Source of the DNA: Corallochytrium limacisporum Hawaii | Taxonomy: Eukaryota > Protista > Pluriformea | Assembly: GCA_002811645.1 (NCBI GenBank) | Contig: PDIP01000023.1 | Span: 85,439 to 149,438, forward strand | Direction: 5' to 3' | DNA: 64,000 bases | Shown: positions 315 to 40,241 of the stretch, one piece after another | How the letters are laid out: each line of letters opens with the position of its first letter | Numbering within the stretch: the first letter of the stretch is position 1 | Position numbers and translations under genes: made by a program | The notes under the pieces: model-generated | What the model was told of the DNA's origin: nothing | Database searches by the model: none | The model's input: the letters and a program-made list of their open reading frames with translations, nothing else

Positions 315-323
315 CAGGTACTC
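315..323 (+). promoter_or_regulatory. Recurrent upstream element CAGGTACTC (SUA5)
   Basis: GT at 318, 113 nt before ATG 431. A second copy CAGGTATGA at 404-412 lies 132 nt before ATG 539. Confidence 0.45.
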
Positions 324-430
324 GGAAGAATTAGATGCTTGACTTCCAAAACATTGTTGTATGTGATCTGAACAGAATGCCCCAATTCAATTGTTCCAGA
401 TGGCAGGTATGAATGGAGATGTCTTGATTT

Positions 431-1732
431 ATGTATAAGCTCAGAACTGCGGTGCGTAGTTGGAATCGTCATAGCCTGTATCTGCTTTGGTCCGGACGTC
501 ATCGATTGCAGCACCATGGTCTAAGGTCTTTCTATACCATGGCTACACAAATCATTCACGCAGCGTCCCTCAGTGGCGCAGAGCTTGAGGAGGCATTGAA
601 GCCCGCCGTGGAGGACATTCGGTCCGGCAATGTGGTTGCAATCCCGACGGAAACAGTGTACGGACTAGCTGCCAACGCCACTAATAGTGCAGCGGTAAAG
701 AAAATCTATGCTACCAAGGGCCGACCTTCTGACAATCCGCTAATTGTACACGTCAGTAGTCTTGAGATGCTCAGACGATCGAACATAGTCACTGAAATTC
801 CCGACATTTTTGAGGCTATTGCAAAGGACCTCTGGCCTGGGCCTCTCACATTGATCATGTCTAAGAATGCTTCCATAGTGCCTCCGGAGATTTCAGGACA
901 GTTAGAAACTATTGCAGTCCGGATTCCGAGCCATCCAGTCGCTCGAAAATTCATCGAGCTCTGCGACGTGCCGCTGGCGGCACCGAGCGCCAATCTTAGT
1001 GGGAAGCCGAGCCCAACCACGGCGCACCACTGCCTCCAGGACTTGCAAGGCCGCATCTCTTGGATCATCGATGGGGGTGTCTGCGCAGGTGGTCTGGAAT
1101 CAACAGTGCTGAACCCCTTGGCTGATCCTCCTGTGGTGCTCCGGCCGGGTGGTGTGGATCGGCAGACACTCCAAAAGTATTTCTTGAAGTCCATTGAGAT
1201 GTTTTTGCCCCATCGCGACAATGCCAAGGATAGCACCAAAGCGAGCCCCGATAGTCCAATGAAGTCACATCTATCATCAACCAATGGCGATGCTTCACCA
1301 ATGGCACCAGGAATGAAATACCGTCATTACTCTCCAGATGCTGTCGTAACTCTGATTGACCATGCGGGACATGGTGGTTTGACGGGAACAGAATTCTCCG
1401 GGGACAGTCTGAGAATGTTTCTGGAGTCTGAGATTCACAGAAAGAACACCGATGGCGATGGAAAGAAACTGATTGGCTTGATCAACCTCAGCAAGCAGGC
1501 GCACGCGAAAATGATTTGGAGCAATCTTGCCTTCGACGAAGTAATGGATCTCGTGGAAGACAACGCGAGTGATTCATTCAATATCGGCCGTCACATCTTC
1601 GCTAGTCTCCGAGAAATGGATAACCGCCACGTCGATGCCATTGTTGTTATTGGGCTGGACTCTTGGAGTGGTGTTGGTGAAGCAGTGTTCAATCGGATCT
1701 ACAAAGCTGCCGCCTATGTGAAGAGTCCCTAG
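431..1732 (+). CDS. SUA5: Threonylcarbamoyl-AMP synthase Sua5 (YrdC + SUA5 domains), N-terminal presequence-like extension
   Basis: PTETVYGL, KGRPSDNPLIVH, AAPSANLSGKPSPT, GLESTV, LRPGG and APGMKYRHYSP motifs. Second in-frame ATG at 539. Confidence 0.95.
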   Translation: MYKLRTAVRSWNRHSLYLLWSGRHRLQHHGLRSFYTMATQIIHAASLSGAELEEALKPAVEDIRSGNVVAIPTETVYGLAANATNSAAVKKIYATKGRPSDNPLIVHVSSLEMLRRSNIVTEIPDIFEAIAKDLWPGPLTLIMSKNASIVPPEISGQLETIAVRIPSHPVARKFIELCDVPLAAPSANLSGKPSPTTAHHCLQDLQGRISWIIDGGVCAGGLESTVLNPLADPPVVLRPGGVDRQTLQKYFLKSIEMFLPHRDNAKDSTKASPDSPMKSHLSSTNGDASPMAPGMKYRHYSPDAVVTLIDHAGHGGLTGTEFSGDSLRMFLESEIHRKNTDGDGKKLIGLINLSKQAHAKMIWSNLAFDEVMDLVEDNASDSFNIGRHIFASLREMDNRHVDAIVVIGLDSWSGVGEAVFNRIYKAAAYVKSP

Positions 1733-1802
1733 TACAGTTCCAATACTTAGTCAAATAAAGAACGTAAGCATCTTGTAATTGATTGTTATGCAAATTTCGT
1801 AT

Positions 1803-3107
1803 CTATAACTCATCATGCCCATGGAATGGATGATCGGGATCGTCTACAAGCTGTTGGACATCAGGAATATCAGCCTCAGTAAGTTTGCACCAAGCCGGCG
1901 TAGCAAAGGTTACGTACACTCGACAGTCACTATCGTACGCATCAATGATCGTGTTCTCCGATCCACAGGAGAAGTCTATTTTGGCACTCCACTTCTTACC
2001 TCTCCGACAGGTCTGGGCACCTGGTCGATGGATCAATGACCCAGCGTCAAGATCCAGCTTCTTGTTCCATAATCCCACCAATGTCTTCTCTGAAGGCCTG
2101 TTCTTGTCCTTAATTAGGTAAGCTGCTTGCATGATACACACTTCGTACCTACGATCAGTTCCGTCAAAATCAAAACATTCTTCGAAGAGGTCAAAGAGTG
2201 CCTTGTCTTCACCGTAATCAATGCGCAGCAGTTTCTCAAGATCCATGCCCATGTCTCTAATTTCATTGGCCTCGATCCGAATATCTCGGCGTTTCGTGAA
2301 GGCCTCGTTGTATCGATTGGTGACGTCTTGTTCCGCTTTGGTCATTTCCGGGCGCGGAGTGCCGAAGCTGGAGCCTAAGCCTTCCACCCCCGCCTCCTTC
2401 TGTTTCTTCCAGTCCTTGTATCGCTGACTCCATTCCTCTTGCCTCTGGTCATCAGCTTGCTTTGCGGAGTTATAGGCCGCCTCCAGCTCCATTACCACTT
2501 GGTCCAACTCCTTGACTTGCTTGCGCTTTTCCTCGACAGTGTTAGAGTATTCCTTGATCTTTCCCTCGAGAGTCAAAAGTTTCTTCGCACCCCTTGCTTC
2601 CATCTCTGCACGTCTTTCGATGGTGACTCGGGCTCTTCCAATCCGCTCTGCTGCTTCAGCTCGCCACTTCTCAAGGGCCTCTGCGCAGAAGTTTCTACAT
2701 TGTACTGCCAGTGTCATATCCTTGTTGTGCGAGGGTAATAGTGAAGCATCCGATACTTGATTGGCAACCCATTCGTCTTGACCGTCACAGCAGTCACAGA
2801 GTCCGTCGTTGACGAACGAAGCAGGGACTCGGTGGGCTCTGAACCCGATCTGCTGGCAGGTGAAGCTACCATTCGCACATGCCGCAGTGCCTGGCTCATC
2901 ACTACCGTCAGGACAGTCGCATCGGTCGTTGTTCACCCGCTTGCCACTGATCTTCTTGGATCCGTCGAGGCATTCAAACTCTCCACCGTCGATCGCTTTC
3001 CGGTACTGTTCCTGTAGATCGCTTTCTACGCCCATAATCCATCCTTCACCAGTCGCAAAGGCGGTGATCGCCAGGGTCAAGAGCGTCAAGCACTGAGCGA
3101 ACTTCAT
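1803..3107 (-). CDS. PRKCSH: Glucosidase II beta subunit (PRKCSH/Gtb1-like)
   Basis: Signal peptide, NNDRCDCPDGSDEPGTAAC and VNDGLCDCCDGQDE LDLa-like modules, coiled coil, MRH-like C-terminal domain, terminal HDEL. Confidence 0.92.
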   Translation of the reverse strand: MKFAQCLTLLTLAITAFATGEGWIMGVESDLQEQYRKAIDGGEFECLDGSKKISGKRVNNDRCDCPDGSDEPGTAACANGSFTCQQIGFRAHRVPASFVNDGLCDCCDGQDEWVANQVSDASLLPSHNKDMTLAVQCRNFCAEALEKWRAEAAERIGRARVTIERRAEMEARGAKKLLTLEGKIKEYSNTVEEKRKQVKELDQVVMELEAAYNSAKQADDQRQEEWSQRYKDWKKQKEAGVEGLGSSFGTPRPEMTKAEQDVTNRYNEAFTKRRDIRIEANEIRDMGMDLEKLLRIDYGEDKALFDLFEECFDFDGTDRRYEVCIMQAAYLIKDKNRPSEKTLVGLWNKKLDLDAGSLIHRPGAQTCRRGKKWSAKIDFSCGSENTIIDAYDSDCRVYVTFATPAWCKLTEADIPDVQQLVDDPDHPFHGHDEL

Positions 3108-3517
3108 AGTGTTCTATCTTCTTGACAGATCTTGAGAAGACCATTGGTCTCTATGCCAGCGGCACAGGTTAGTTCAACCACTTCCATTCCAATTCCGTTA
3201 GTTAACAATACATCTCAGGACCTGCACCATGAAAATCCTTTTAAACACCTTCAAACACTGTGAATTAAGTCGGGTGTCGAGGCTCTCTTTCCTTGGGTCC
3301 AAGTCGTCCTCGAAGTGCGGCGCATTTGGACGCCAACGTAGAACATCGGTCAAGGCCCCCAACTCGACTCCGATGCACGCACCACAGCCCCCCGGGATGG
3401 GGGGGGTTTGGCAAGTGAGGGAATTGTGTGCTGGAGAACCTTCGCCGCCGCTGTTTTGGCTTTTTTCGGGAACAGGGACGGTGGCGGAACGCAGGACGTG
3501 GGTCGAGAAAGCTTCTT

Positions 3518-3526
3518 CAGGTATTT
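3518..3526 (+). promoter_or_regulatory. Recurrent upstream element CAGGTATTT (TFIIE-beta)
   Basis: GT at 3521, 144 nt before ATG. Confidence 0.55.
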
Positions 3527-3664
3527 CTCATCGTACCAAGTCTATTTGCAACAGAAAACATAGAAGTGTAAATAGTGCAGAGAGTGGCTCAAACGTGAAC
3601 TGCATGACAATGGTTTAATCTCAATGTTAAATATATTGTGACAGTATATCAACATCTAAAAATC

Positions 3665-4585
3665 ATGTCGGGAATGTTCGGTGGCGGCAGCAGCCAGAAA
3701 CCGCCTGCAAGTCAGGGACTACGGTTTGATACCGTTTTGAAGGGCTTGAAACACACAACGACACTCTTTGCTGAGCGTAAGGGACGCAATACAGCCTTGT
3801 TGCATATGCAATGGCAAGCAGATCTTGTTAACCGTTTGAAACGTCACCGCCTCAAGAACCCAAAGACCCTGGGACGAATGTCTGAAGAAGAAGTGAAGGA
3901 GGCCGTCCGTGAATTTGACCGTGCCACACAACCCGAGGCAGACGCAGACGACAAGGAAGAAATTGCCAGGAGGGATGCAGAAATGGAGGACTTCCTGCAG
4001 GGATTGCGCCAGAATCCTCGCATTGCCTACGACGAGAGCGTCAAAAGCTATCGCTTCCGGCCTGCTTACGAAGTTGTGGACAAAAATGGGCTCATGGACG
4101 CCTTGATGGAGAACCGGAACAAGAAGTGGCCACTCTTCTTCAACAATCATCGGAGACACGTCAACCGGCAGGAGCACTGTTTAGGTGTGCCGCTCGAGAC
4201 TAGGGAGAATATTAGTGGTCTCGAAGACTCCTATGAGCTGGTCAAGCGGGATGTCGAGAAGTTGGAAGAAGATGGTAAAGTTTACGTGTTTAAACAGAAG
4301 CACGGTAGTCGCAAGCATATCATCCATATCCACGGTGATCCAAGTACACGACGCAAAGTGAATGAGGAGATCAAGACTCTGTGGAGTCGAGTACACGTGC
4401 CCGCAAAGGAGGAATACTACGCACAGCTTGAGAGTGGGCGTTTGCCCATGATCCGCCTCAAATTCGCTCCCATGGCCGGGGGTGATGAGAAGAAGAAAAA
4501 GTACAAGGCTAGCATCAAGCAGACCAATACTCACGTCGACTTGGATCAGTTCAGCGGGACCGTGAAGATGCAGAAGTTGGGATAA
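3665..4585 (+). CDS. GTF2E2: Transcription initiation factor IIE beta subunit
   Basis: LRQNPRIAYD..YRFRPAYEV, LEEDGKVYV, VNEEIKTLWSRV and basic C-terminal KKKK..QTNTH follow the Tfa2/TFIIE-beta pattern. First ATG at 3665. Confidence 0.85.
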   Translation: MSGMFGGGSSQKPPASQGLRFDTVLKGLKHTTTLFAERKGRNTALLHMQWQADLVNRLKRHRLKNPKTLGRMSEEEVKEAVREFDRATQPEADADDKEEIARRDAEMEDFLQGLRQNPRIAYDESVKSYRFRPAYEVVDKNGLMDALMENRNKKWPLFFNNHRRHVNRQEHCLGVPLETRENISGLEDSYELVKRDVEKLEEDGKVYVFKQKHGSRKHIIHIHGDPSTRRKVNEEIKTLWSRVHVPAKEEYYAQLESGRLPMIRLKFAPMAGGDEKKKKYKASIKQTNTHVDLDQFSGTVKMQKLG

Positions 4586-4646
4586 AGACAACCGTGTGTG
4601 TATTTAGTAAACAATTCTGTGCTCATCCTTACAAACATGACACATG

Positions 4647-5840
4647 TTAATCACTTTTCATGGAGTTAACATTGGCGAGGCTCGAGGTAAGCTGAACACC
4701 CTTCATACCACTATTCTTTCGCGGTCCTCCGGTTCGCTGGTGATGGTTTGATGTCGTAAAGCTATAGGAACCTTGGGGTAGGCCCATGCCAGAGCTACCT
4801 CCCCTTCCGTTCGTCGCTCCCATTTTGCTAATGGGGGAGTTGCTTGGAGTCTGTCGGCTGTCCTCGATCCTAACGCGCGGTGTGTTCAAACCGCCAGTCG
4901 TAGAAAAGTTCTGTGCAAAAGAGAGGCCACTTGAGGGCGATCGGTAGCCTATTTCATTGTGTTGGGCACTATATGCGTGGTCTCCACTATGGTGGAGATC
5001 ATTGTAGCCGGCCGCAGCAGACTGGCTGGATTGGGCACTAACACGACCACTTGGGTGAGTTTCCCTTCGTTTCTTGAATTCAAGGACCTTGTCAAAGAAG
5101 TTTCTGATTGAGGCCATGGCATCGTGCTGGAGCTTCATGCCCTGGGGATCCACTCCATTCACCATGGCGATGTCGCATCCGAACTTACTTGCAAGACTAT
5201 GAGGAATCATCTTGGGGTCCACTGGTCCATATCGTCCCGAACCGGAGCCCTTTGATGCCCTCGGAGCTTGATCCTTCTTGCAGCCCACAATGAGTACTGG
5301 CCTTGCAGCAGGAGCGTCCTCTTCGTCAGGTTCATCCAATCGTGAGGATTCCTCGGACAAGGAGAATCGCCCACCACTTAGAGTCGCCATTGATGCTGAA
5401 GCGGACTTTGATGAGAACCATGAGCTAGCAATGTTCTGAATGTTCTGAAAATCCATTGTCTTATTGCCTCCGAAGACCCGGCGGCTCCATGCACGCAGAT
5501 TCTGCATGCTGCGCAGATTTGTCATATCGTAAACGAGCATCAATCCGTCCTTGGCGTACGTGTAAAACACAGACCGAGCTGCTTCATTGTCTAGTGATCC
5601 CGACACGTCGTAAAATTCTACAAAAACAGGCCCACTTTTGGACTCATAAAGATAGACCTCCACATTGCAACCGATGGTTGAAGGAACACCTGTTTGTGAT
5701 GCTTTCCCTTCACACAGAGCTCGCAGAAAAGATGAGCGACCCGTGCCCGTGTCACCCACCACCAAAATTCTAATCTTTGGCACCGACGTGACGTCGTCTG
5801 GCTCAGGAGCGCGTGCTGGTCCTCGCCCGTAGCCCCACAT
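4647..5840 (-). CDS. RABL3: Rab-like 3 atypical small GTPase with long low-complexity tail
   Basis: ILVVGDTGTGRSS, TIGCNVEV, VEFYDVSGS, RSVFY and DMTNLRSMQNLRAW match the RABL3/LIP1 family. No CaaX. Confidence 0.8.
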   Translation of the reverse strand: MWGYGRGPARAPEPDDVTSVPKIRILVVGDTGTGRSSFLRALCEGKASQTGVPSTIGCNVEVYLYESKSGPVFVEFYDVSGSLDNEAARSVFYTYAKDGLMLVYDMTNLRSMQNLRAWSRRVFGGNKTMDFQNIQNIASSWFSSKSASASMATLSGGRFSLSEESSRLDEPDEEDAPAARPVLIVGCKKDQAPRASKGSGSGRYGPVDPKMIPHSLASKFGCDIAMVNGVDPQGMKLQHDAMASIRNFFDKVLEFKKRRETHPSGRVSAQSSQSAAAGYNDLHHSGDHAYSAQHNEIGYRSPSSGLSFAQNFSTTGGLNTPRVRIEDSRQTPSNSPISKMGATNGRGGSSGMGLPQGSYSFTTSNHHQRTGGPRKNSGMKGVQLTSSLANVNSMKSD

Positions 5841-6018
5841 AGTGGCTTTCGAAACTGTTGTTAAATAAACGTACCATTCATTGATACATCATGCTCGCCC
5901 TATGCTCACATATTTTCGACAACTATTCAGAATACGGTCCGAAAAAGAAAAGCCACATCCCTATGCGTAAACGACATCGATTAGTAAAGTCTCCCATTAA
6001 CAATCCGCCGTCCATCGA

Positions 6019-6027
6019 AAGTACCTG
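6019..6027 (-). promoter_or_regulatory. Recurrent upstream element CAGGTACTT (RABL3)
   Basis: GT at 6024, 184 nt before ATG. Confidence 0.45.
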
Positions 6028-6334
6028 TTTCGCTTGCTAGTATTGGTTACTGCCCGTTTCGACGTGAAACCGACCGGCACCTCCAAAAGGACGAGGCCCG
6101 GGAGTGCCGGCACGGGAAATAGGAATATTCGGAGTCGGACCTGCCTACCCCTCCGCCTCTGTTCCTTTTGAAGGGAGGGAGGGGAGGAGGGGATGAGTTG
6201 GAAGGGTCCAAAGTACACCACATCAAGTGTCTCTTACGGTGATTATACGAATAATGGATTTAATATATGTATATGTTAGTCTTGCCTCCATGGTATCCTG
6301 CATTCTCTAATCATTGTACACCACACCAAGACGA

Positions 6335-7322
6335 TTACGAAATCAGAACAGCATCGACCCTGCGCCCATCGAACAGACGGCCGTTGAGCTTTGCGATCGC
6401 GGCATCTGCAGCTGAACGCTCGGCGAAGACAACAGTCACCAGCACCTGAGAGTCATCAGTAACCGTAACGGAGACGTCCTTGACAGTGCCAAAGGTGCTA
6501 CATTCCTCTTCAACGTCTTCCCGCAACTCATCATCAGCATCTTCCGGACCCCACCATATTGCGCAGTTGAATGACAGCTTCGTCCGCCGCTGACTGAGGT
6601 TCTGAAGTCTGGGTTGCCGTAGTGCTTGACATCACTCCCCGCGGAGCGATGGCAGGAATCACTGTTATCTTGTTGCCACCAAGATCAAACCCATGCATTG
6701 CCTTCACTGCGTCATCTGCTGCTGTTGCTTCCACAAAACTAATGTACATGTATCCACAGTGTCCACCATTCTTCTTTGGCATTTCAAAAGCACTAATCTC
6801 GCCGAATGCATCAAAAACTGACTGCAAGTCTTCCTCTGTAAGCGCTTCATGAACCCCTGAAATAAAAATTCTACATTCGTCCTTTGCCCGCTGCTCCAGT
6901 GCCTTGATAAGTTCATGGTGCCGGGGGTGCAGTGTTGAAGGAAAGTCGATCCTGATATTTCGGCCCTGGACCGACATTCCGTGGCCAAGGCTGCGTGCTT
7001 GGCTTGCTGCCTCTGGTGTCTCAAATGTTAAGAAAGCAAAGTTTTGCTGCTGGCTCCTTGGCCGTTTAACATTAATAACTGGCCCGAATCGTTCCGTCAA
7101 AGTGTGCAGGAACTTCGCCTCGTCCAGGTCTGCTGGGACATTGCCACAGTAGATCTGACAGTGGTCCTGTAGAACCTTCGCTTCCAATACTGCTGGATCA
7201 TCTCCATCTTGGACATTCTTCAGTTTTTCTGTCAACTGCCCTGCAAATGCTCGAGCTGAGGCCAGGCGCTCTTGCTGATCTTTGGAAAGCTGTGGCAAAC
7301 CAGCAGCATGAGCCTGAACCAT
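6335..7322 (-). CDS. PUF60: PUF60-like splicing factor (RRM-RRM-UHM), interrupted by a +1 frameshift at 6549-6552
   Basis: Two RRMs in ORF 6534-7322. Removing one G from ATGGTGGGGTCCG gives QLRNMVGPEDADDELREDVEEECSTFGTV...LNGRLFDGRRV, a typical UHM. Confidence 0.8.
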
Positions 7323-7448
7323 CTTGGTTTCCAGGCTTCAAAAATTCTATTTATGGTTCCATGCCGTGCTTCTTAGTGGAGACCTCCGAGACATGTTTTC
7401 GATGCGTACGGCTCATTCTCTAAGTTTGTTGATATGATTCCTGGTGTG

Positions 7449-7457
7449 AAATACCTG
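7449..7457 (-). promoter_or_regulatory. Recurrent upstream element CAGGTATTT (PUF60)
   Basis: GT at 7454, 132 nt before ATG. Confidence 0.55.
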
Positions 7458-7720
7458 CACAATCGGAAGTTCGATTGTTTCACATGGCCCAACACCCACC
7501 CTGCAACGGTGGGGAGGGCTTCTACGGAGCCTCCGTACTACTAATCAATATTTTCGTTTGAAGCAACCCCTGTCAGACAGAGCCATAATTTTACTACATC
7601 ATGGACACGGCAACGTGCAAAGGATTCACTCAAGGGTCACTAATTGTCACTACTTCATGGTTGAATATTCATACTTTGAACTACAGGTTTCATTTAGGAG
7701 GATACACGGTGATTCTGTGT

Positions 7721-8401
7721 CTACCGACCGCGGCCTCGCCCACGGCCGCGACCGCGTTTCCTGCCCGACTGTGGCGTCGACTTAGCTGCTGCCCTTCCAG
7801 GCCTACCGCGAGCACTCGGTTGCCGTTCATCAGCATCTGGTTCTTTCTTTTCATTCGGCGACTGTCCTCGCGGCGACTTGCGGGAAGATCTACCGACCTT
7901 CTCTTCTTCCTCGTCATCTTCAGGCGGCTTTAGATGATCCACTTCATCTGTCTCTTCGTCTGCTTCTCCCTTTGCTTGTTCTTTATTCGCTGCAATGGTC
8001 TTTTCATATTCCAAAGCCTTCTCTTGCAATGCATCCATATTGAACAAAGAGTTCAACCACGCCTGGACCTGCTTCAGGTTCATGGACTTCTCGACAGTCT
8101 TCACAGCCTTCAGAATTTCGTCCATTGCTTCCTTCTGTTGAGATCCGAGTGGGCGCAGTGCAACGATAGCTTTCAAAGCCACAAGCTCTACTTGGGGTGT
8201 CCAAGCGGCAGAAATTGGTTCCCAGGGATCCCCAGTGGCAGGTTCATTTTTTTGGCGCTTTGCCGGAGGCCCCGCAGACGCTTTGGAGTCAGACTCCGCT
8301 TCCGCTGTTCGTGAAGCACTACGCTTTGGCCGAGGCCGTGTCTGTGCCTGCACTTTCTCATTCGCAGCAGCAGAAGCTGCACGTCCTGATCGACGAGCCA
8401 T
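7721..8401 (-). CDS. MRGBP: Eaf7/MRGBP-like NuA4 subunit
   Basis: WTPQVELVALKAIVALRPLG...WLNSLFNMDALQE resembles the CT20/Eaf7 domain. Acidic/basic tail. First ATG at 8401. Confidence 0.7.
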   Translation of the reverse strand: MARRSGRAASAAANEKVQAQTRPRPKRSASRTAEAESDSKASAGPPAKRQKNEPATGDPWEPISAAWTPQVELVALKAIVALRPLGSQQKEAMDEILKAVKTVEKSMNLKQVQAWLNSLFNMDALQEKALEYEKTIAANKEQAKGEADEETDEVDHLKPPEDDEEEEKVGRSSRKSPRGQSPNEKKEPDADERQPSARGRPGRAAAKSTPQSGRKRGRGRGRGRGR

Positions 8402-8737
8402 TGTTTGTATTTCTTGCTTTACCCTGGATTCGTGCGATTCCTTCACATGATGGTCCCGTATTCTTGAAATCGTTAGACCGTCACAAGATCCATTAATCTA
8501 TGCCCAAATATTGTCTCTACATGTGCTTTCACTAGTGTGCAAAACAAATACCAAACTGAATTTCAGGGAACATTTGTACACCTGCCAATGTTTATCGAGG
8601 GCACAAAATTAGGAAATGACAAGCTAGTCAACAATAAAGTGGTCCACAAAAACTCGCCTTGTTTGCAATAACATCGGCGTTGCGTGGACCGCCTGTTGCA
8701 CACTGAAGGGCCCAGTGTCCCAGCTCATTTCGCCAAC

Positions 8738-8750
8738 TTTCGGCGGGAAA
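8738..8750. promoter_or_regulatory. E2F-consensus-like site TTTCGGCGGGAAA
   Basis: Reverse complement contains TTTCCCGC. Lies in the divergent EAF7/BRCT promoter. Confidence 0.4.
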
Positions 8751-9070
8751 GAAACAAAAAAGAAAACTGAGGAGCCCATCAAAAGAGTGCCCCCCGGGGG
8801 CCCCCCGGGGGGGGGGGGGGGGACGTCAGGGGATACCCTGGGTTGAAGAAGGGGGAAGGGGGGGAAAGGGTGCCCCCCGGGGGCCCCCCGGGGGGGGTGG
8901 TGAGGGACATCAGGGGATACGCTGGGTTGAAGAAGGGGGAAGGGAGGGAAAGGGAGGCTCTGTGCTAAGTCCGACTGCCCCCAGAACGTATTCGGGAGCC
9001 AATGGGTAGCTGCAGCCTATGTTGCAAGTGATGGTGTCATTAACCCGATATTTGTGCATAATCCTTTGAC

Positions 9071-9721: not shown

Positions 9722-9745
9722 CACTTTAAGTTTCTTTTATTGTGA

Positions 9746-11485: not shown

Positions 11486-11620
11486 CGTGTCGTTGGCGTA
11501 GTACGGTAACGCCAATATCGATCCGATATGCTTATCACATGCCTAGTGTAGCCCACTGCTCCCTATATCTCTCCATGCAGCAGACTATCGCGGTGAATGT
11601 ACCGAGAGATCTGTCGTATC

Positions 11621-11629
11621 ACATACCTG
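11621..11629 (-). promoter_or_regulatory. Recurrent upstream element CAGGTATGT (RBR ligase)
   Basis: GT at 11626, 141 nt before ATG 11485. Confidence 0.5.
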
Positions 11630-16030: not shown

Positions 16031-16039
16031 CAGGTATTT
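16031..16039 (+). promoter_or_regulatory. Recurrent upstream element CAGGTATTT (MRPS14)
   Basis: GT at 16034, 93 nt before ATG. Confidence 0.5.
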
Positions 16040-16126
16040 GCAGTTTTGGATATCATGGTGTCTAATGACTGGAACTGATTATGTGGAAATCTGGGTTTAT
16101 CTGTGAAGAAGAAGACTAGTGTCAAG

Positions 16127-19632: not shown

Positions 19633-20816
19633 TGTATTGGGTTGGTGGTATGATAGCCGACCGAAACGATGTATGAAACGCCACGATCTTGTCTGGAGGC
19701 CGGAGTGAGACCTGCACTGTTTTCGAATAGCTGTTTGCACTCTAGCTCTCCCTCCCCTCCCCCCCCGCTGGCAGTGAGACCGCCCCAACAAGCCCACTCA
19801 CAATACATTCGACACGTGAATTCCTTTGCACAGTGCGACTAAAAACCGCCCACCGTCACACCCCGACAATTCTTCCCTGTCAGTTTTTTCTTGCCTTTTG
19901 CTACGTAAACAAGAGGCCAAAAGAGGGAACAGGTTCCCCCCNNNNNNNNNNNNNNNNNNNNNNNNNNNNNNNNNNNNNNNNNNNNNNNNNNNNNNNNNNN
20001 NNNNNNNNNNNNNNNNNNNNNNNNNNNNNNNNNNNNNNNNNNNNNNNNNNNNNNNNNNNNNNNNNNNNNNNNNNNNNNNNNNNNNNNNNNNNNNNNNNNN
20101 NNNNNNNNNNNNNNNNNNNNNNNNNNNNNNNNNNNNNNNNNNNNNNNNNNNNNNNNNCCCCTCCCTCCCTTCCCCCTCCCCACAGCACCAACTTTTCCCC
20201 ATCCCACTTCCCCAGTGATTGTTATGCCTTTTGGCTTCCCATTCGGACCCACCGCCACGGGGATAATCCCACTAACCCCCCTCCCCCCGGGGGGGGGGGA
20301 CTTCTCCAGTTGTCGGCGGGTGTTTATGCCAGTCCGTGGACACCCTCTCCAGCTAATGGGGTCCTCATGGTGACCGCGAAAGTATAAAAAATGTACGGGA
20401 ACGTTCTCGGCAAAGTGGATCACCGACAACGAAGCAAAGGAAAGAGGGGAAGTGATTGGACTGCGGGACGGAAGTTGAGCGGGCCACAAACACTTCGGCT
20501 GGCCCCGGGCCCTGAAGGGAGTGGGCAGCCACGGACAATAAATTGATCTGTGTTGGTGGCGGACCCAGAGGGTCCCCTTGCTTTTTTCTCTTTCTATTGG
20601 ACCGAGTGATCGTTGAAACCAAGGAGGGGTTAATCACGGAGTTTAAGTATATCCGGAATGTTATAAAATATTGAAATTGTCGCTTAATATCATTGAATGC
20701 AATATGACGCTACTTTTACATTTGGAGCGGCCTCCTGGGATCCCGAGAGGAACCCACCTAGGTGGGACCCGTTGGTGGGGGCACCAGGAAACCCGTCGGG
20801 ACGGTCGGGTTTGGTG

Positions 20817-22128
20817 CTGCGGAAACAAGCAGAGATACTTGGCCAGACTCTCGCACGGGGAATTGACCGTCGGGATATGAAGACGAAGACATACCTTGAG
20901 CAACTTCAAAGCGACTCGGAGCAGCATCTGGTCATGGCTCAGGCCCATGCAGCTCGGTGTGATGAATTGCGGGCTCTGCATGCCACCCGCCTCAACACAT
21001 TGCACAAGGCCTTCACAGAAAATCTTCGCAGTCGCCAAAACGAATTTGACACGGAGCGCAAAGCTTTGCAAACGCGGCACGAGGGAAAACATGCAGGAGT
21101 TGAAAGGTGTCATGCAGACCATGATACAGGTCTACGAAGAGGTCGAGGCAATGCAGGAATTCCATACCGCAAGGGAACAGCTCCGGAATCAGGATGCCAA
21201 CGAGAATCATGCTCTGCGGAATGACCTCGAGCAACAGGTCAATGATTTGTGGGGTCAGTTCCAGACCGCCCTCAATAACTACACAGCAAACACAGCAGAC
21301 CAAAGCGAAGCTTTCCAACGGTCAAAACAGAAAGATGAGCAGATCGCTCAGGTGGATGCGTAAGCTGCAGAAGCTCCGCGACAAAATCGGCGCCATGCGT
21401 GCAAAAATTGTTGGTCTCAACCAGAAGAATGATGAACGGAACCACATCCTTCGCTCGGAGAAGGAGAACCTACAAAAGCAACTCCAGCAGCTAAAGATGC
21501 GGATGAACAAGTATCGTGAGGGAGAGAACCAGCGCCTGTTGGAGCTTACAATGGCCTCTGACCAAACCATGAAAGAACTACGTCGCAAGCGTGAAAAGGC
21601 ACGCAAAGTTTTGAAGCTTGCCGAAATCAGACCGAACAGGAGAAAGTGCTGCCCTTCTACGAAGACACCGCTTTGGACGGCGACGAGAAAAATGGTGTTC
21701 AAGCAGATGAAGTGATGCCTGACATTGTGCGCAGCCACGAAGCCGAGGACATCGCTGGAGAGAGCGAGTTCCAGACCCGTGCCCGCACCGTAGACGGTAA
21801 ATGTGTAAGTGAATATTCGTGCATGAATAACTTCTGGAAGCGCTACAATAAGATCCTGCTGGACCGTTTGGCCATGACCCGCAATCGTGACTCATTAGCT
21901 AACGAAAATGCCAAGCTAAAGGCTCTGCTGAAGCAGTACCTTGACGGCATATCGGTCTACTCTCAAACGGTTGTACAGCCCAACAACACTCTGCTCATGG
22001 TGAACAATCATAGTCGCCTGCCGATGTCTGTTAGTGTCAACGACCCGCGTGTGAAACGTGTGCAGCCTACTGTTGTCGATGCCAACACTGTTTACCGACA
22101 GCAGCAGTTGGGTCCTATTCATCGGTAA
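20817..22128 (+). pseudogene. CCDC65: CCDC65/DRC2 nexin-dynein regulatory complex subunit, frameshifted and 5'-truncated
   Basis: Four consecutive reading frames give EILGQT..EFDTERK, DLWGQFQ..NYT, MRKLQKL..KVLKLAEI and TEQEKVLPFY..NFWKRYNK..LKQYLDGISV. Shifts at ~21084, ~21355 and ~21629. Confidence 0.85.
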
Positions 22129-22564: not shown

Positions 22565-23395
22565 ACTCGTGCAGATCCAACATAGAGAAAATCAGATATT
22601 GATGTTGCTGCTAGAAGATGGATTAAGTCTATTTTTGATACGTTTCAAATAGTCAGAGGAAAACTCAATTGCATGCATTTGTTGCATGTTATTTGTCACA
22701 ACAACCCCCTCGGGTTCCCCGGCAAAGCCCTCCCGCGAGACCTCTCTGGATGAGAAGGCGGCGAGCGGAAAATCCTGGGATTTGGGATGGTGGCTCCTCC
22801 CCCCCCTCCCGGCAGTGGGGCCGAGCCATCGCCATGTCAGACACTTTTGACTCGAAATACCTGGACTACGTGATGTGTTGATGGAGGAGTGCGTCCCTAG
22901 ATAGACAAAAATTGATACTTGAACCAGCTCTGGCATCTATTGAACAACATTTTTCGATGTGTCCCATGGTGGATCGATGGTCTGTGTCGGACACTGGGAA
23001 CGAAGTAGACATCCGAAACACCTCAACTCCTGCTATGTGACCAAAGACTAAGAGTTACGGGTTCTTGGATCATGTATGATTTATCCATCTGTCTGTAGCG
23101 TTGACAGAGATGATTTCTTTGAAGTTCAGTGAACGCTGACCCAGAGGCAGCGTAGTTGTCATCGAGACAAGTTTGGAAGAGTTGGATCTCTCTGCACCCA
23201 TTCAAGTTGCAGTCAGGCCCCGGCTGAAGTAGCATGGTTTTGAATGACATGAGTAAACATGGTATTCGAAAGGCAATTTATCTCAATGATAGAAGATACA
23301 CCACAGGTTGGCTTATTTTGTTATTCGTTTTCTGCGTTGACAGGCCCCTATGCAAATCGGAACTGTGCCTGCATGTTTCTTGCTGGAAGGTTTCT

Positions 23396-23992: not shown

Positions 23993-24114
23993 TTTTGCGA
24001 ATTGTGCAGTTGCCTTCCTGGTATCTCACTACACAAAGCCACGTTCTATGATCACACACAATTACAAGAGTACAGCATTACTGGAACATTTACCCAACAG
24101 AGCTTGCAAGTTTC

Positions 24115-24123
24115 GAATACCTG
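24115..24123 (-). promoter_or_regulatory. Recurrent upstream element CAGGTATTC (Rho)
   Basis: GT at 24120, 128 nt before ATG. Confidence 0.55.
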
Positions 24124-26343: not shown

Positions 26344-26352
26344 AAGGTATTC
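26344..26352 (+). promoter_or_regulatory. Recurrent upstream element AAGGTATTC (MRPL10)
   Basis: GT at 26347, 142 nt before ATG. Confidence 0.5.
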
Positions 26353-26488
26353 TTTCTCTACGACGTATTAAGAACCATAGTAAATCGGCAATTATAATTG
26401 TAAGTGATTTCTTAAATGATTGAATCTAGTATGGCACCATTGGAAAGAAGATAGGGATTTGAAAAGTAGTCAGAGTAGCACAGAGAAC

Positions 26489-28345: not shown

Positions 28346-29699
28346 GATTAGCAAACTACTTCAATTTGTTATCCTTTGGACTACTAGGGATTGTACGTTG
28401 CAGAACTCCTTACTATTACTTCTTAAACACCTGCTCGCCAAACGATTTGGCTCCATTGCGTTCAGGAAGCCATTAAACGGACAGCCACGACATCGAACTC
28501 AACAGCACAGAAATGCGGTCACGAAAAGCAAACAGAATTTGTCAAGAAATATTTGACGAATGAATGAGAACTCTGCCGTTAGTCGCGTCCGCACGGGAAG
28601 TACTATCTCATCCGTCGCTGTGCTAAAACCAACCATTTCCTACTTCCGAAGGTTTTCCGTTGCGCACAGGACCAACCGCACCAACTCGCCCGCGGTTCCT
28701 TTTGTGCTGCGTCTGCGGCACCAGTGCCTGAGCTAGGGACCCAAGGCGTGCTGCTGTTTGTGTGGGGCCGTCGGCCGTCGGCAGTGAACCCAAAAAGCAA
28801 AAAAAGAAATCCCTCCCCGGTTGCCCGCATCACAGGGCCACCGGGACATCGAGAGCTGTTGGGTACTGAAACAACGGCTGAATTTCAGCAGGCATGGCGG
28901 GAGCCGGTACAACTTCGTCACCGGGAGCCGGGACGCTAAGAAAAATGATCTTCGGTGGCAGTCAATACACGACCCGGGGAACGGCGAGGGAGAACAAAGA
29001 AGAGAAAGAAATCGCAGACAAAAAGCAGAAAAGTGATCTGAGGGAGGCGGTACGTTCCAGTACGGAAACGTAGCGTATCGAACAGAGCCCCAAAAAAAAA
29101 ATTAAGGGCAGCGAGGGGTGGTGGTGCATGGGCCACCGGCCGCATTCCAAACGACCCCAAATTTTTCGAGAGAGTACGCTTTGGCTTCTCGGCAGGTTCA
29201 ATTTTTTTCGGTCGAAACCGAAGCGAATCTGCAGCGCTGGGGACAGTAGGGTCTATTTCAAGCGTTCGCCGGTAAGTAAACTTTGGGTAACAGACAGTGC
29301 GGTTCATGGTCTGCTAGGAGGGGGCGGGCGGCCAGTGTGCTTTTTGCTTATTTTTCCGCCCCCGGGCTCTCGGAACAGAGGGCGCTCCCCTTTGTGGCTC
29401 GGTGTGTCTCACTCACTGTTAATTTTTTATTGTTTCTCCCTTTGTATCCCACAGAGGCAAAACGCTGGGTCTCCACCGAACCCCGCAGAGGAGGGGGAAG
29501 GCAGCAGCAAACACGCCCCTGGGAGCGACAGGGAGGTTTCCGTCTTTTTCCCTGTTCTCGGCCGAATGCTGCGAAAAGTCAGTACATTAGGTACCAGCAG
29601 CCCCTTGCGTTCCACCACAGATTCCAATAGTTCCCTTTCGCAGGCGGAGTACGGAGCAGCGAAGGCCCCCTATCTCCGTACCCGACCGTGAATGGGAGC

Positions 29700-30417: not shown

Positions 30418-30698
30418 GGCGAATAGAATCGCGCGCACTATTTCTGTTTCTTCACATCGGGATTTGGAAACCACTATACACCTCTTTATCAGATTTTCAA
30501 ATTTTAAAATGACTTTCTTTATCGCTCGAGAGTTTGCCCCGCTATTGCTGCAGTCCTTCAGGGACAGTTTGAAATAACTTTCCAGGGCAGGAGTGTGGCA
30601 TATTACACTGCCAATGCGAGGGGAGCCAGTCAGCCCCACCCCACCAGCGCGCCCTCCCTCTTGCAAACAAACGAGACGGGCAGGCAACCCGTGGCATC

Positions 30699-31613: not shown

Positions 31614-31754
31614 GGTGAACCGTATCTGCTCTTTGTTATCGATCGACTACCTTGAAGATCATCCCCTGCATTTCCGACCTAAAGGCCCTTTATGAACTGG
31701 CTGTATATTTGTAATAGAGTCGTTATTGCGGAAGTTTCTGCTATCATGGGTTAG

Positions 31755-31763
31755 AAGTACCTG
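31755..31763 (-). promoter_or_regulatory. Recurrent upstream element CAGGTACTT (TCAIM-like)
   Basis: GT at 31760, 147 nt before ATG. Confidence 0.55.
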
Positions 31764-32487: not shown

Positions 32488-32624
32488 GTTGCACCCTTCT
32501 TTCTCAATGAGTTAGCACCCTCTCCTTACTTCTCTGCACACTGTTTCGTTGGAGTGGTCTTCACTGAATGTGTTCGTCTGGACGGCTGCCATGTTCACAA
32601 AGTGTAGGTTCAATTGTCCTTGTC

Positions 32625-32633
32625 AAGAACCTG
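32625..32633 (-). promoter_or_regulatory. Recurrent upstream element CAGGTTCTT (DUF4286)
   Basis: GT at 32630, 143 nt before ATG. Confidence 0.45.
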
Positions 32634-33514
32634 TCAACAGCCTGATCACGCTGCGTACGCCACTTTTTTGTGTGTCACTGTTATAGAGGACGCATTATTG
32701 TTTCCTACCAATCCAAACTCGAATCCAAGTGTGCTTTCCTGCAGCCTCTGCTTCCATCAACCTTGCGAATATTTAAACAGTCCTCCTTCGTGTTCCCAAG
32801 GCCTTCCCCCTCACGCCCCGCCCGGGCCCGATCCTCCCCGAACGGTCGCCCTGCCCTTTCCGTGTTTGGCCATTAATCTTTTATGCGCTCGCGCTTCGCT
32901 CGTGTGAGGGCTTATGGGTTCTGTCGGCCGTGTACTTTTACCGTTAAATTCACAATTTCTTGTGTCCCAGATCTTCCTCTGGGGCCTCTTTCCCCACCGA
33001 CCGCACTCCACCCTACACCGATCTTTGTCAAAGGAAAGATAAGAGAAATACCTTCTCAACCCCGGCAAACCCCCTAGTAAATATAAAAATACACCAGGCG
33101 CCATCTTGAGAAAAACACCCGAAAAACCGCGAGCCAGAGGAATCCCGGTGCGGGCCCCGAGAGCCGGAGCGTCGATGAGGCTGGAGACTTTTTGCGGGCG
33201 CAAGGGATGTTTGATATCCGGGCTTTGAATGTAATATCAATCAATATTTTGGTCGAGTGGGTCCCGGAGGACGGAAAACGTTTGAAACTATCTGGGGCTT
33301 GGATGTTGTGGCCCCGTGCCGTTTTGGTCCCATGGCAAGCTCGTTTTGGTTTACCTTGGCGCTGGGTACTTCAAATCCGTCCGTAATGTGAAACATATTG
33401 AATGCTCTCTAAAGAAAGAAAACCAACCACGTTCCACGGGACTTCATTGGGGTGCCGCTGACACGAACAAGGTTTAGTTGTAAAGAAATCGGAACATAGA
33501 CTAGCTCCGCAGCC

Positions 33515-34603
33515 ATGTATTCAGCAGTGAGTGGACTGATGAAACAGTATGGCATGAGCCAGCAAGAAGAACAAACCCAGTCGGAAGAAGGAGCAGACCA
33601 ACCAGATGAGGATGTGAGGCCAACCACAGAGCAACGGACAGCGGACGGTATGGCGACTGAAGACGCCTCTGGAGCAATGACGGACGGCCCGGAGGGACCG
33701 GACGACACACCAATGCTTAACTTCTGGAACAAAGTCAAAACTGCCGTAACAAGCAAAGAAACTTACGAATCTCTGCAAAAAGGTGCGAATCAATTTGCCA
33801 CCGCTGTGACTTCAGAAGAGACATACAGGAAACTAGGAGAGAACGCAAAAGGCTTTGCGTCAAATGTAAAGGAGAAAGTAGAAAACCTAAACCAGGACTT
33901 TGAACGCATGAATCAAGACTTTGTCAATGAAAAACGCAAGCAAACCCAGGGAGTTCAGCCTCCGTGGGCAGGGTATGACAACAGTGACGAATTGAAGGAG
34001 AAAATCCTGAACATCTCCTCCGATTCCAAATACCTTCTTTCTGCCCCTTCCGCATCGGCGCGGTTTGAGTTTGATTTTGAGACCTACGAGCCGGTCGCTG
34101 CGGCCAGTCTAGAGGCAGACCCCCGCCTGCAGGAACTGCGCAAACAATTGGTTCCCAAGGAGATCAAGGAGCAAGAATTCTGGCGGAACTACTTTTACCG
34201 CGTGCATTTGATCAAGCAGAGCTCCTCGTTGATGACGACGAGAGGTAGCCCGAGGGGCAGCCCATCATCGGAGCTGAATGTTACTGAGGACGGAGTAGCG
34301 GGAACAAAGACGAGCCGGCCCTTGACTCCTGCGTCATTGAATGGCAGCGGAGCCGAGCTTTCCGGGGGCACTGCTGTGATCTCTGCCCTGAAGGATTCCT
34401 CTCCGAAGCCGACGGACCCAATGTCAGCACGGGAGCCAACCAGTGAGACAACGACCACAGCCGCAGGGAAGGCAGCAGAGGACGAGGCCCCTGAATGGGA
34501 GAAGGAATTGGAGGCAGAGCTCGACGACCTTGATCTGGGCGGAGACCTGGGCGATGTCGGTGCTGCTGATATTGACTTTGATGATTTAGAGAACGAGTTG
34601 TAG
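33515..34603 (+). CDS. SYAP1: BSD-domain protein, synapse-associated protein 1 (SAP47) family
   Basis: PPWAG..LKEKILNIS.D, FEFDF, LVPKEIKEQEFWRNYFYRVHLIKQ and WEKELEAEL. Confidence 0.88.
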   Translation: MYSAVSGLMKQYGMSQQEEQTQSEEGADQPDEDVRPTTEQRTADGMATEDASGAMTDGPEGPDDTPMLNFWNKVKTAVTSKETYESLQKGANQFATAVTSEETYRKLGENAKGFASNVKEKVENLNQDFERMNQDFVNEKRKQTQGVQPPWAGYDNSDELKEKILNISSDSKYLLSAPSASARFEFDFETYEPVAAASLEADPRLQELRKQLVPKEIKEQEFWRNYFYRVHLIKQSSSLMTTRGSPRGSPSSELNVTEDGVAGTKTSRPLTPASLNGSGAELSGGTAVISALKDSSPKPTDPMSAREPTSETTTTAAGKAAEDEAPEWEKELEAELDDLDLGGDLGDVGAADIDFDDLENEL

Positions 34604-34695
34604 ACAGTAAAGAACATAAACAATCATAAGACTTAACGGTTTAAAGTCTTTTTTGGGTCCGAGAGTTATTGTTGTCTATGTGTTTGTTTTATTTC

Positions 34696-37600: not shown

Positions 37601-39165
37601 AGCAAAGGCCTGATGACCTCCCAGACAAAAAAGATATTGCATGCTTCACGTTCCCCCTCGTCATATGGGTAATGCACGTAGCGCCAGTTGTAACTGTGTA
37701 CCGCTCCGCGATGGGGACACACGATGCCCTTAGGGACGCCAGTGGTGCCACTGCTCAATACTGTATACGCTGTGTCATCCGGGGTCGGTTTCGGCCGATC
37801 CTCCGGCATGGGTGGTGCTGTTTTGCGGATGTTTTCGAGCCAATCGCCCTCCATGATTAGTTGCTTCTGCCAACTCGGGAGCTTCTTGGAATGGTGAGTG
37901 AAAGTCAAAACGCAGGGTGGTTTTGCCTCACGGCACACTCGCTCCACCAATTCCTTCGGATAGACAATCTCCATGGGCATATACCCACCGCCGGCCTTCA
38001 GAATGGCCAAGTATGCAATAGCGTACTCCATGGACCGTTCCATAAAGATACCGCCCACCTCATTTGGCCGAATCCCCGATTCATACAAGTAATTGGCCAG
38101 CACAGTCGTGGCATTGTCCAGTTCAGCGTAGGTCATGCTGCGACCGCCGTCCACTACCGCAGTTTTGTTTGGTGTCTTGGAAACCTGTTCCACAAAGAGC
38201 TCATGCAAACACTTGTCGCGGGGATAGTCCATTATGTGACTGTTCCATTCGTCCATGATGTTGAGCGAGTCGGCTAAGTTCTTATCCAGATCTCCCTGAA
38301 GCTGAGATAGGAGATCCTGGAAAAATGCACCGCGTTCTTCTGGATACCAAGGGTAGTATAGGTTCTTGCTCGAGGACCACTGCATGTCAAAGACTGTGTG
38401 ATCAGTCTTCTTGAAGAGTTTCTCCCATTCAATGCCCGATATTCCCATGTTTTGTACTTCTGTTTCAGTCGAGTACAGTGTCGCAGGGCACCGAAGGTTG
38501 TAGTTCCTCTCATCTAGCATGTAGTACTGGAGCCGATCGACATCCCTACGGTATCGCAAGACACTGCTTTCATTCGCGTTCTTTATGGGAACTCTGAACA
38601 GCGGGTGGCCGAGCTGAGCCAGGTCGCTGAACAAGGTCTCGTCATCCATGCCCATGGCAGCTTTCCTCATATAGTGGGCTCGAGCCGGTGCCGGCGCGTT
38701 CACCATTACCAGGCGCAAGGGACGTGAAAGCGAGTGGCTTGCCAAGCGATTTGCAACCTCAAAGGCGTACAGCCCACCGACCCCCATACCAAAGAGAACA
38801 TATGGAACATTTAGGAATGGAGCGACCTGTTGGGCCAGGGCCTCACTAAATGCGTCCGCGTCACCGTGCATGGAGCTGGCTCGCTTTAGACTAATCCTGG
38901 TCTGGTCCTTTACTGCACGGGAACCTGCATGGCGCATTTCCACTAAATCTGGGTTACGAGTTTTGCGCTTCTCCACCCGAGGTTCTTCTGTGAACCGAAC
39001 ACAGTAGATCTCCACATTGTCTGGGAAGAGTTGATGCCAGCCGTCAAAGGCCATCTCATTGCCACCGGCATATGGGAAGCAGAAGATACGAATGCTCACA
39101 TCCTCCTTGACCTCCTGACACTTGATAAAAGGACTCACCTGAGTCCAGACAGATTCGTTCGCCAT
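34696..39165 (-). CDS. NRPS-like reductase: degenerate TE - adenylation (ATRR-like) - T - T - thioester reductase
   Basis: FCFPYAGG TEII-like start. A motifs SSGTTGVPKG, LYRTGD, VKIRGYSV and SGKLDR. Two GGHSL carrier motifs. R domain LTGGTGFLG, HNGA, NVLGT, GYGQTKWVAE, RPG. Confidence 0.93.
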   Translation of the reverse strand: MANESVWTQVSPFIKCQEVKEDVSIRIFCFPYAGGNEMAFDGWHQLFPDNVEIYCVRFTEEPRVEKRKTRNPDLVEMRHAGSRAVKDQTRISLKRASSMHGDADAFSEALAQQVAPFLNVPYVLFGMGVGGLYAFEVANRLASHSLSRPLRLVMVNAPAPARAHYMRKAAMGMDDETLFSDLAQLGHPLFRVPIKNANESSVLRYRRDVDRLQYYMLDERNYNLRCPATLYSTETEVQNMGISGIEWEKLFKKTDHTVFDMQWSSSKNLYYPWYPEERGAFFQDLLSQLQGDLDKNLADSLNIMDEWNSHIMDYPRDKCLHELFVEQVSKTPNKTAVVDGGRSMTYAELDNATTVLANYLYESGIRPNEVGGIFMERSMEYAIAYLAILKAGGGYMPMEIVYPKELVERVCREAKPPCVLTFTHHSKKLPSWQKQLIMEGDWLENIRKTAPPMPEDRPKPTPDDTAYTVLSSGTTGVPKGIVCPHRGAVHSYNWRYVHYPYDEGEREACNIFFVWEVIRPLLRGSTSYVIPDTDIYDPQKVVDFIQGNDITRILFTPSMAELIVEVIPTEELSKKMSSLKIVWLCGEVVTIRLRDALLNAMPGVKLLNLYSISECHDVSVCDLNNMDSKVSVKYASCGHVMENVRVYILDDNLQRVPLGVAGELYVGGPCLAKGYLNMPEKTAERFVRNPFYDPEDPQSRLLYRTGDRGRLLPNGELELIGRCDFMVKIRGYSVVLGAVEVALCEHPKISSAVVVTHGNEGEDKKLVAYVVPESWDDQPNVADVKRFMKDKVPHYAIPSVFMDIPALPIHPASGKLDRKQLPKIENLDLGSSRMNTDVAATTATNSMLTGKPLRHEDTAEVLENKVALRQPQERDLSHIPNVIERLIRGVWGDLLEVNAAQLHHDANFFDNGGHSLLSVRMLNRLTNLFGEECKIPVAEFVKSPTLDFLVDQVENLQPAEITIRKCYGNVLRQDPLKLDTNASFFDLGGHSLAASRLVIELNKTFKGLNLETAAFMKQSSVSEVLYTVLALRVAKSPELRASIEMRSPKRLASGPTSPWLASTGPRISNGVSREAPLDLFREVFLDPAIYPAATRKTGYARLRVRDATKPPQRVLLTGGTGFLGAFLIYYLLCDTQCMLFCLVRAEDPDEGFRRLEKNLQHYQLLSKAEYFGFYDRVIPVCGNLDQPLLGLSNVEWKSLAGEVDAIIHNGAAVNLVKPYTSLKATNVLGTQEILRLAVTNGMFDVGATRVKPVFYVSTNGVFPTGYGKCMEDDPMGHWEDLEDGYGQTKWVAEQICLRARERGLPVCIVRPGNLSGASFNGAWQDDDFMRLIMLGCMRTRTYPDDVNWGFDMTPVDWAAKALVHLACQSPGRALGRILHLQSPHTPTSSDQFFSMFKGNLATLKPVPYFDFRRRVSDEANDTANVLLLKLEAGLDSFSRYLASNIEFDSAEMKDALSKANIPCPEVDEELIRKYVMHITQTMNGIANGN

Positions 39166-39627
39166 CGGATGTGCACTTTATTGGAACTCTCCTTACATAC
39201 TAGACTATAAATGGATCAAATTCTCTCCCCACAGTCTTCCTCGAGACCTCTGAAACCTAATTCTTTACATAGCAAACACACATCCATGGTTGTCGCATGT
39301 CGCGGATGCAAAATGCTTTGCTTCATATACCACCCATTCTATGCTCCTATATCACTGGATCACCAAACCAACCGCACAGGCGCAGGCACAGCTCTGCGGA
39401 TACACATCATCGTTTCGATTCAGATCTCCTAGTGGACCCGATCCCTAAACATCCGACCCCGTGCGCTATGTGGCTACCCTCACCCTTCTCGTCCGTACCA
39501 AATTTTCCTACTCTTCCTAGTCTGCGCGACGAGACGAAGGGGATTAAATCAGAGCGAGTGAGGTGTCGGGGTGTGTGTGTGTGTGTGTGTGCTTTTTCAA
39601 ACTTTATCATTTTGCGAAGGGGGAGGG

Positions 39628-39678
<51 letters not shown>
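39628..39678. repeat. (TGC)17 trinucleotide microsatellite
   Basis: Perfect repeat in the divergent NRPS/LIM intergenic region. Confidence 0.97.
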
Positions 39679-39679
<1 letters not shown>

Positions 39680-40232
39680 CGTGCCACCCTCTCGGGCGGC
39701 GAAGGAGGCGGGCCGGCCATGTACCAGACCCAAGGGAAAAAGAGTGGATTTTCTTCCCACCGTTACCGGCCTTTTGGGGTGCTTCAAAGCTCTGAAGGGA
39801 GGGGGGAGCGCGAACAGAAGAGAAATTAAAAAGAAAAGTTTAAAGGAGAGAGAGACCTGAGCCCAAGAAAAAAAAAACCACGGGCGAAATAGAGAGATAC
39901 CCAAAACGTGAAATAGTGAAATGGACAGCAGCTCCGACTAGTTTCAATAAAGGTGGCACGAGTCGGGCGCTGCGACTGCATCATCGAATCGGCGGGCGAT
40001 CGAATAAACGATTTAGCCAGTGGGGAAGGGGGGGGGGGGGGGGGGGGGGTTATTTGGTTTGGGCCCGTGGGTTTTTTGGTCAAAAGTTCAAGTTCCGCCC
40101 ATTTGTCAGGCCACCCTTTGTTCGGAGTTCTTTTTATTGGTGTTTCGCAGTTTGTGGGTGGATTATGTGGCTGTCGATACGGGCCTATCACAGCGCATTG
40201 TTGTGGATGGAATTCGGATGGTTCAATCAACG

Positions 40233-40241
40233 CAGGTTCTT
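40233..40241 (+). promoter_or_regulatory. Recurrent upstream element CAGGTTCTT (LIM)
   Basis: GT at 40236, 142 nt before ATG. Confidence 0.45.

Follow-up and report, generated by a model that had tools for sequence, protein, structure and literature searches.

The window analysed here is a stretch of 64,000 nucleotides (nt) from Corallochytrium limacisporum Hawaii (contig PDIP01000023.1, positions 85,439 to 149,438 of the forward strand), and its subject is a short directional element upstream of start codons, with the refined consensus G-[G/C]-T-A-Y-T-T-V-A-A. The original prediction, made from the letters alone, had described the element as MAG|GTAYTT at a near-fixed ~140 nt ahead of the ATG and had offered three readings of it: (a) a core-promoter element with short uniform leaders, (b) the donor of a near-universal 5′-leader intron, or (c) a trans-splice acceptor. 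The letters and distances of its sites were as described in 17 of 17 cases. Three genes that it held to lack a clear copy, namely SND1, the NRPS gene and the orphan at 30417, were all found to have variant copies. The RNA contigs referred to below come from two runs of probable RNA (X1 and X2), used as contigs only and placed on positions 2850-8780 of the window. The copies in the window are as follows.

317-326, forward strand, SUA5; first ATG at 431, with a transcription start predicted near 371 from the U1 and U2 spacing given below.
406-415, forward strand, second and weaker copy of SUA5; second ATG at 539, with a start predicted to fall between the two ATGs near 460.
3240-3249, reverse strand, glucosidase II beta; ATG at 3107, RNA contig starts at 3190 and 3189.
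3520-3529, forward strand, TFIIE-beta; ATG at 3665, RNA contig starts at 3566 and 3578, unspliced.
6016-6025, reverse strand, RABL3-like gene; ATG at 5840, RNA contig starts at 5960 and 5962.
7446-7455, reverse strand, PUF60-like gene; ATG at 7322, X1 contig start at 7368, while X2 passes through unspliced.
8543-8552, reverse strand, EAF7-like gene, exactly TGGTATTT; ATG at 8401, RNA contig starts at 8474 and 8513.
11618-11627, reverse strand, RBR ligase; ATG at 11485.
16033-16042, forward strand, MRPS14; ATG at 16127.
19722-19731, reverse strand, SND1, C-variant GCTATTCGAA; 98 nt from the ATG at 19632, overlooked earlier.
22852-22861, reverse strand, exact copy 296 nt upstream of the MED9 ATG, present as originally described; its service to MED9 is uncertain.
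24112-24121, reverse strand, Rho; ATG at 23992.
26346-26355, forward strand, MRPL10; ATG at 26489.
28422-28431, reverse strand, DP; ATG at 28345.
30569-30578, reverse strand, T-variant GTTATTTCAA; 160 nt from the ATG of the 30417 orphan.
31752-31761, reverse strand, TCAIM-like gene; ATG at 31613.
32622-32631, reverse strand, DUF4286-like gene; ATG at 32487.
33365-33374, forward strand, SYAP1-like gene; ATG at 33515.
39322-39331, reverse strand, NRPS gene, variant GGTATATGAA; 165 nt from the ATG at 39165, posterior 0.78.
40235-40244, forward strand, LIM gene; ATG at 40378.
55617-55626, reverse strand, variant with the TATA consensus, GGTATAAAAG; 103 nt from the ATG at 55522, beyond the coordinates first covered, posterior 0.72.

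Because the motif had been defined post hoc, its enrichment was assessed on genes outside the window. The held-out set comprised gene predictions in ~213 kb from elsewhere in the genome (53 genes, or 50 after doubtful starts were dropped), and genome-wide searches used the assembly of 24,109,830 bases in 286 contigs. Within 200 nt of the ATG of the 53 held-out genes, AGGTAYT occurred in 7 on the sense strand, in 0 on the antisense strand and in 1.3 after dinucleotide shuffling, and for GGTAYTT at -210 to -70 in the 50 genes the corresponding counts were 12, 1 and 0.9. A matrix evaluated by six-fold cross-validation on 72 genes (window plus held-out) found a site at or above the threshold of 8 bits in 38 of them on the sense strand and in 4 on the antisense strand. 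When GNTAYTTVA followed by a start-like context was searched genome-wide, 728 matches were found at 70-170 nt versus 295 at the control distance of 400-500 nt; two backward genome-wide controls were unreliable, one resembling the motif itself and the other being inflated by GT repeats. The claimed sense-strand enrichment near starts was thus borne out in both held-out genes and the genome, the element precedes at least half of the genes, and it has the direction and the enrichment near gene starts of an RNA polymerase II core-promoter element. The described fall in GC content at the element was likewise recovered in the 72 genes, from 0.53-0.56 upstream to 0.39-0.43 downstream (~0.54 to 0.41). 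The near-fixed spacing did not generalize: the 128-150 nt band holds 10 of the 17 window sites and only 8 of 36 held-out sites, the standard deviation of the distance from element to ATG is 25 in the window and 44 in the held-out genes, and the cross-validated median is 133.5 nt with a 10-90% range of 93-178. The tight band is therefore mostly peculiar to the window under study.

The refined consensus departs from the MAG|GT form of the original prediction. Expectation maximization (EM) on the held-out genes returned D-G-[G/C]-T-A-Y-T-T-V-A, in which the invariant letter is the G before the supposed GT, followed by S and TAYTT, and three A-rich positions follow the V. Counted from the supposed GT, 57% of sites have A at -2 and 96% have G at -1, GG is preceded loosely by A, G or T, and C takes the place of the supposed +1 G in about a quarter of sites (24-30% by EM). 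This C variant, GCTAYTT, was found in 8 of 50 held-out genes versus 0.6 in shuffled sequence and, because it had itself been found post hoc, was tested genome-wide; a first test was weak (127 versus ~120 antisense), and the variant was separated only in the test that included the downstream VA and a distance control. Genome-wide near-to-far ratios by the second position were 3.0 for GG, 2.5 for GC, 1.8 for GA and 1.2 for GT, as scaled to totals from hand counts over 100 listed matches with a sampling error of ~4-5 points per class. TATTTAA was the commonest strong form, present in ~30 of the 100 listed genome matches by hand count. Neither canonical splice donors nor canonical TATAWA were enriched in the held-out upstream regions.

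The position of the element relative to the transcription start was read from small nuclear RNA (snRNA) genes. Capped snRNAs start at their transcription start. The U1 gene has TTGGTATTTGTAA upstream, with its first T 52 nt before +1 and a score of 10.5 bits, for which the chance expectation is 0.02 over 200 nt and 0.003 over 30 nt; at U1, as at EAF7, the word is exactly TGGTATTT. The spacing at U1 was then set as a prediction for U2, for which a short conserved stretch of U2 served purely as a pattern and the motif was sought ahead of it, and the single match was GGTATTTAAAAA with its first T 51 nt before ATCGCTTC, which we take to be the U2 5′ end. The element thus lies at a defined distance from the start, -52 in U1 and -51 in U2, in two genes only, and the mRNA contig ends are compatible with it. 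In positions 2850-8780, the element is upstream of 8 of 9 RNA contig 5′ ends, which begin 37-85 nt past its first T (5 of 9 at 56-63), and the contigs do not cover the promoters except where X2 crosses that of PUF60. In mRNA promoters, a pyrimidine-purine step shows a weak peak at +51 (20 of 51 versus a mean of 13.1). Since it is upstream of the U1 and U2 5′ ends, the element covers about -54 to -44 and is no part of the RNA, and the ~140 nt to the ATG resolves into ~52 nt plus a variable leader averaging ~80 nt. These results support the core-promoter option of the original prediction without the uniform short leaders attached to it, and we consider it very probable that this is a directional core-promoter element which occupies about -54 to -44 and is not itself transcribed. 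The accompanying proposal that extra ATGs between element and start codon are untranscribed or spliced out held only in part, as three in TFIIE-beta (3604, 3610 and 3624) are contained in RNA contigs from X1 as well as X2. Downstream of the element, GATC shows a mild excess in the 72 genes (39 versus 23.7 expected), and C. limacisporum has high N6-methyladenine, 6mA (PMC12695648).

In SUA5, the two elements would place one start ahead of each ATG and might thereby yield two isoforms, one long and one short. At its N-terminus the longer form carries an arginine-rich extension, and a mitochondrial and cytosolic pair made through alternative starts is possible.

Within this position and role, we lean towards reading the element, G[G/C]TAYTTVAA, as a TATA variant recognized by a TBP-family protein. 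The core TAYTTVAA, with TATTTAAA as its best form, would be the TATA box of this lineage; one of three TBP paralogues would sit on the core and orient the preinitiation complex, and the polymerase would start ~50 nt downstream, a distance of the fungal kind (40-120 nt) and not the 30 nt of animals, so that the distance to the ATG would consist of ~52 nt and a leader of ~40-125 nt. The genome carries two head-to-head TBP-family genes ~1.6 kb apart (C182:175910-176440 and C182:178016-178534), and a third, divergent and much weaker match (C11:65918-66466; 30 and 25 bits). The Entamoeba TATA box is GTATTTAAAG/C, and Entamoeba TBP also binds TACTCAAA and TATTGGAA (PMC5842622), while in yeast TATTTAAA functions as a core element (PMC4457894). 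The strongest form here (GGTATTTAAA at U2) is the same word as in the Entamoeba histolytica TATA box and the yeast element, and E. histolytica resembles Corallochytrium in having two close TBPs, with a TBP that tolerates similar variants (PMC5842622); by contrast, the tail is more degenerate in Corallochytrium, the leading G is highly conserved and the start is ~52 nt away. With the canonical TATA box (TATAWAWR; STATAAA in fly) the element shares the S-T-A start, an eight-base AT-rich core, direction and upstream position, whereas its positions 3-6 read YTTV and its spacing is 51-52 nt and not 30-35 nt, which is within the range of budding yeast (40-120 nt versus 30-35 nt in animals; PMC11514446).

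Several observations weigh against a TATA box at this position. Most sites are 2-3 mismatches away from TATAWAWR (1-2 mismatches in 25 of 53 sites, 3-5 in 28 of 53 and 0 in none), the spacing is ~20 nt longer than that of the animal TATA box at ~30 nt, and TBP reads eight bases that do not include the G, which is the most conserved letter. The U4 gene has only a partial match at -49, which at 0.4 bits is non-significant, though the best in 200 nt. RNA contig ends are not true starts, and the 72 genes show no shortage of upstream ATGs at -150 to -30.

The alternatives that place the element in the transcript were weighed on the RNA contigs and on splicing signals. That the element is a 5′ splice donor, opening a leader intron of 100-135 nt or of ~60 nt in nearly all genes, is suggested by the likeness to CAG|GTA together with a canonical U1 5′ end, by the RABL3 gene with TACTAAT and a TAG 64 nt past the GT, by 3-4 contig ends at or beside an AG (RABL3 5960 and 5962; TFIIE-beta 3578; PUF60 7368) and by the same lack of upstream ATG depletion. 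The introns proposed in the original prediction are, however, kept in RNA: 3578-3644 is retained and joined to the TFIIE-beta coding region in both runs, X2 retains the whole of 7347-7454, and no junctions at the GT were found in the RNA contigs of either run, although missing joints prove little because short contigs may have been filtered out of the sets. The C variant, enriched near starts ~2.5-fold genome-wide as well as locally, cannot be a GT donor; +4A occurs in 0 of 53 and +5G in 7 of 53 sites despite the normal U1 5′ end; and at U1 and U2 the element precedes the RNA and is no part of it. Genome-wide, the motif with a downstream branch point and YAG was counted 229 times versus 257 in the control, on which the 60-nt introns drawn from contig ends at AG were also rejected, and the GG share among matches with branch point and YAG showed no shift (49 of 100 versus 46 of 100 at the far baseline); a branch point and YAG followed 14 of 40 sites versus 10.5 in shuffled sequence (p 0.15), and an acceptor-like YTAG-purine near the ATG was not enriched (10 versus 10.9). 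A donor role in general is thus largely refuted and a near-universal leader intron very unlikely, while one local 64-nt intron at RABL3 is plausible. Relative to the U2-type 5′ splice site (MAG|GTRAGT), the element shares the CAGGTA look-alike and differs in tolerating C at +1, in lacking +4A and +5G and a downstream branch point or acceptor, and in its absence from RNA. The A at -2 and the G at -1 would fit a CAG|G trans-splice acceptor, or a site that is transcribed and bound by U1 but never spliced, and a leader joined at the site would go unseen where contigs end short of it; yet nine contigs showed no loose ends and none carried foreign 5′ letters, TG and GG often stand for AG, no pyrimidine tract or branch point precedes the site in held-out genes, and the site is not within pre-mRNA but untranscribed and ahead of the capped U1 and U2 genes, which leaves this reading scarcely credible. 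The element might also result from base composition where GC-rich sequence turns AT-rich, or position nucleosomes without being read directly. This would suit the GC fall from ~0.54 to 0.41 at the element, but dinucleotide shuffles, the antisense strand and the variants with A or T at position 2 are far less enriched, and the spacings at U1 and U2 differ by one base, so that we regard it as highly improbable.

Keeping the same position and role, the element may instead be bound by a sequence-specific reader other than TBP that recruits TBP or a TRF2-like complex starting ~50 nt downstream, which we hold to be a possible but doubtful explanation. Its precedents are Drosophila Ohler motif 6 (DMv5) and the snRNA proximal sequence element (the SNAPc site), which lies at about -50 to -65 in animals. 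The latter is likened to the element by position alone, being at a similar distance upstream of U1 and U2, whereas the element here is short, common to protein-coding genes and weak or absent at U4. G and C within the core make poor TBP substrates, and the divergent third TBP-family gene also speaks for a separate reader. DMv5 is TGGTATTT and directional (PMC1779564), with a preferred interval of -60 to -41 (PMC2728527), and motif 6 promoters require Trf2 and not TBP (PMC10183819). Word, strand and position all match motif 6: the GGTATTT core of TGGTATTT is enriched on the sense strand, the U1 and U2 sites at -54 to -44 fall within the fly interval, and housekeeping-type genes carry it in both. 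On the other side, a tail rich in A and the predominance of TATTTAA suit a TATA box, position 2 is G or C and position 5 C or T, the commonest base ahead of GG is A and not T, and an eight-letter match may be convergence. Motif 6 is also variably placed and found in few fly promoters, whereas in Corallochytrium the element precedes at least half of the genes, and its spacing looks constant at two snRNA genes. The partner motif 1 (GGYCACAC) was not among the top words, though no search was aimed at it, and the part of a sponge promoter paper available to us made no mention of motif 6. The element and motif 6 might be one and the same ancient promoter element of holozoans at about -50, with a TBP paralogue or another factor as its reader, and it would replace, in Corallochytrium, the -30 TATA box as the main core promoter of mRNA and snRNA genes; we think this idea improbable. 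The element seems to act like a TATA box or like motif 6 while falling outside the animal TATA spacing, and it could belong to either family or to neither.

Other observations were made alongside the element. The published genome of 24.1 Mb has 0.0 introns per coding kb (PMC5560861), and no coding introns were found in the 277 kb searched. Ordinary-looking intron stretches with GTRWGT, RCTAAC and a pyrimidine-rich YAG nevertheless occur, for example C47:59764-59843, C88:189256-189331, C55:96585-96641 and C64:5067-5123, and make the unverified suggestion that the few real introns use canonical donors. Genome-wide, U1, U2 and U4 were found and U6 was not, by either covariance model or pattern; an assembly gap, an intron or divergence are candidate causes. 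The PUF60-like gene (6338-7322, reverse strand) has a frameshift ahead of its third RRM (6338-6550 matches RRM_1), X2 lacks one base at 6549 so that the frames are joined, and X1 equals the reference; the frameshift looks strain-specific. The DRC1-like flagellar gene (20697-22128, forward strand) is spread over 3-4 frames with PF14775 in the last piece and no convincing intron signals, and either is decaying or contains assembly errors. At 54147-55522 (reverse strand), two overlapping coding open reading frames meet at a frame break near 54655, with no Pfam match and no convincing intron. One X2 contig (3578-5962) links TFIIE-beta and RABL3, two convergent genes, across their 3′ ends, and another (6237-8513) extends from the 3′ end of EAF7 across the promoter of PUF60, by either overlapping 3′ ends or read-through. 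No distance between motif and ATG spans the N gap at 19942-20157, which is ~210 nt upstream of the SND1 copy.

As of 2020, no regulatory sequences had been described for C. limacisporum (bioRxiv 10.1101/2020.11.12.379420), and our search of later literature found none, nor any published description of this element. The results remove the idea of a universal leader intron for this intron-poor genome. Direct mutation of the element is feasible, since C. limacisporum can be stably transfected. The element may also help to find what reads motif 6 (the cited motif 6 literature names no binder), and in practice it gives a way to predict start sites and a rule for designing expression vectors. For the evolution of TATA-to-start spacing, 30 nt in animals and 40-120 nt in budding yeast, it would provide a test in a lineage that stands between the two.

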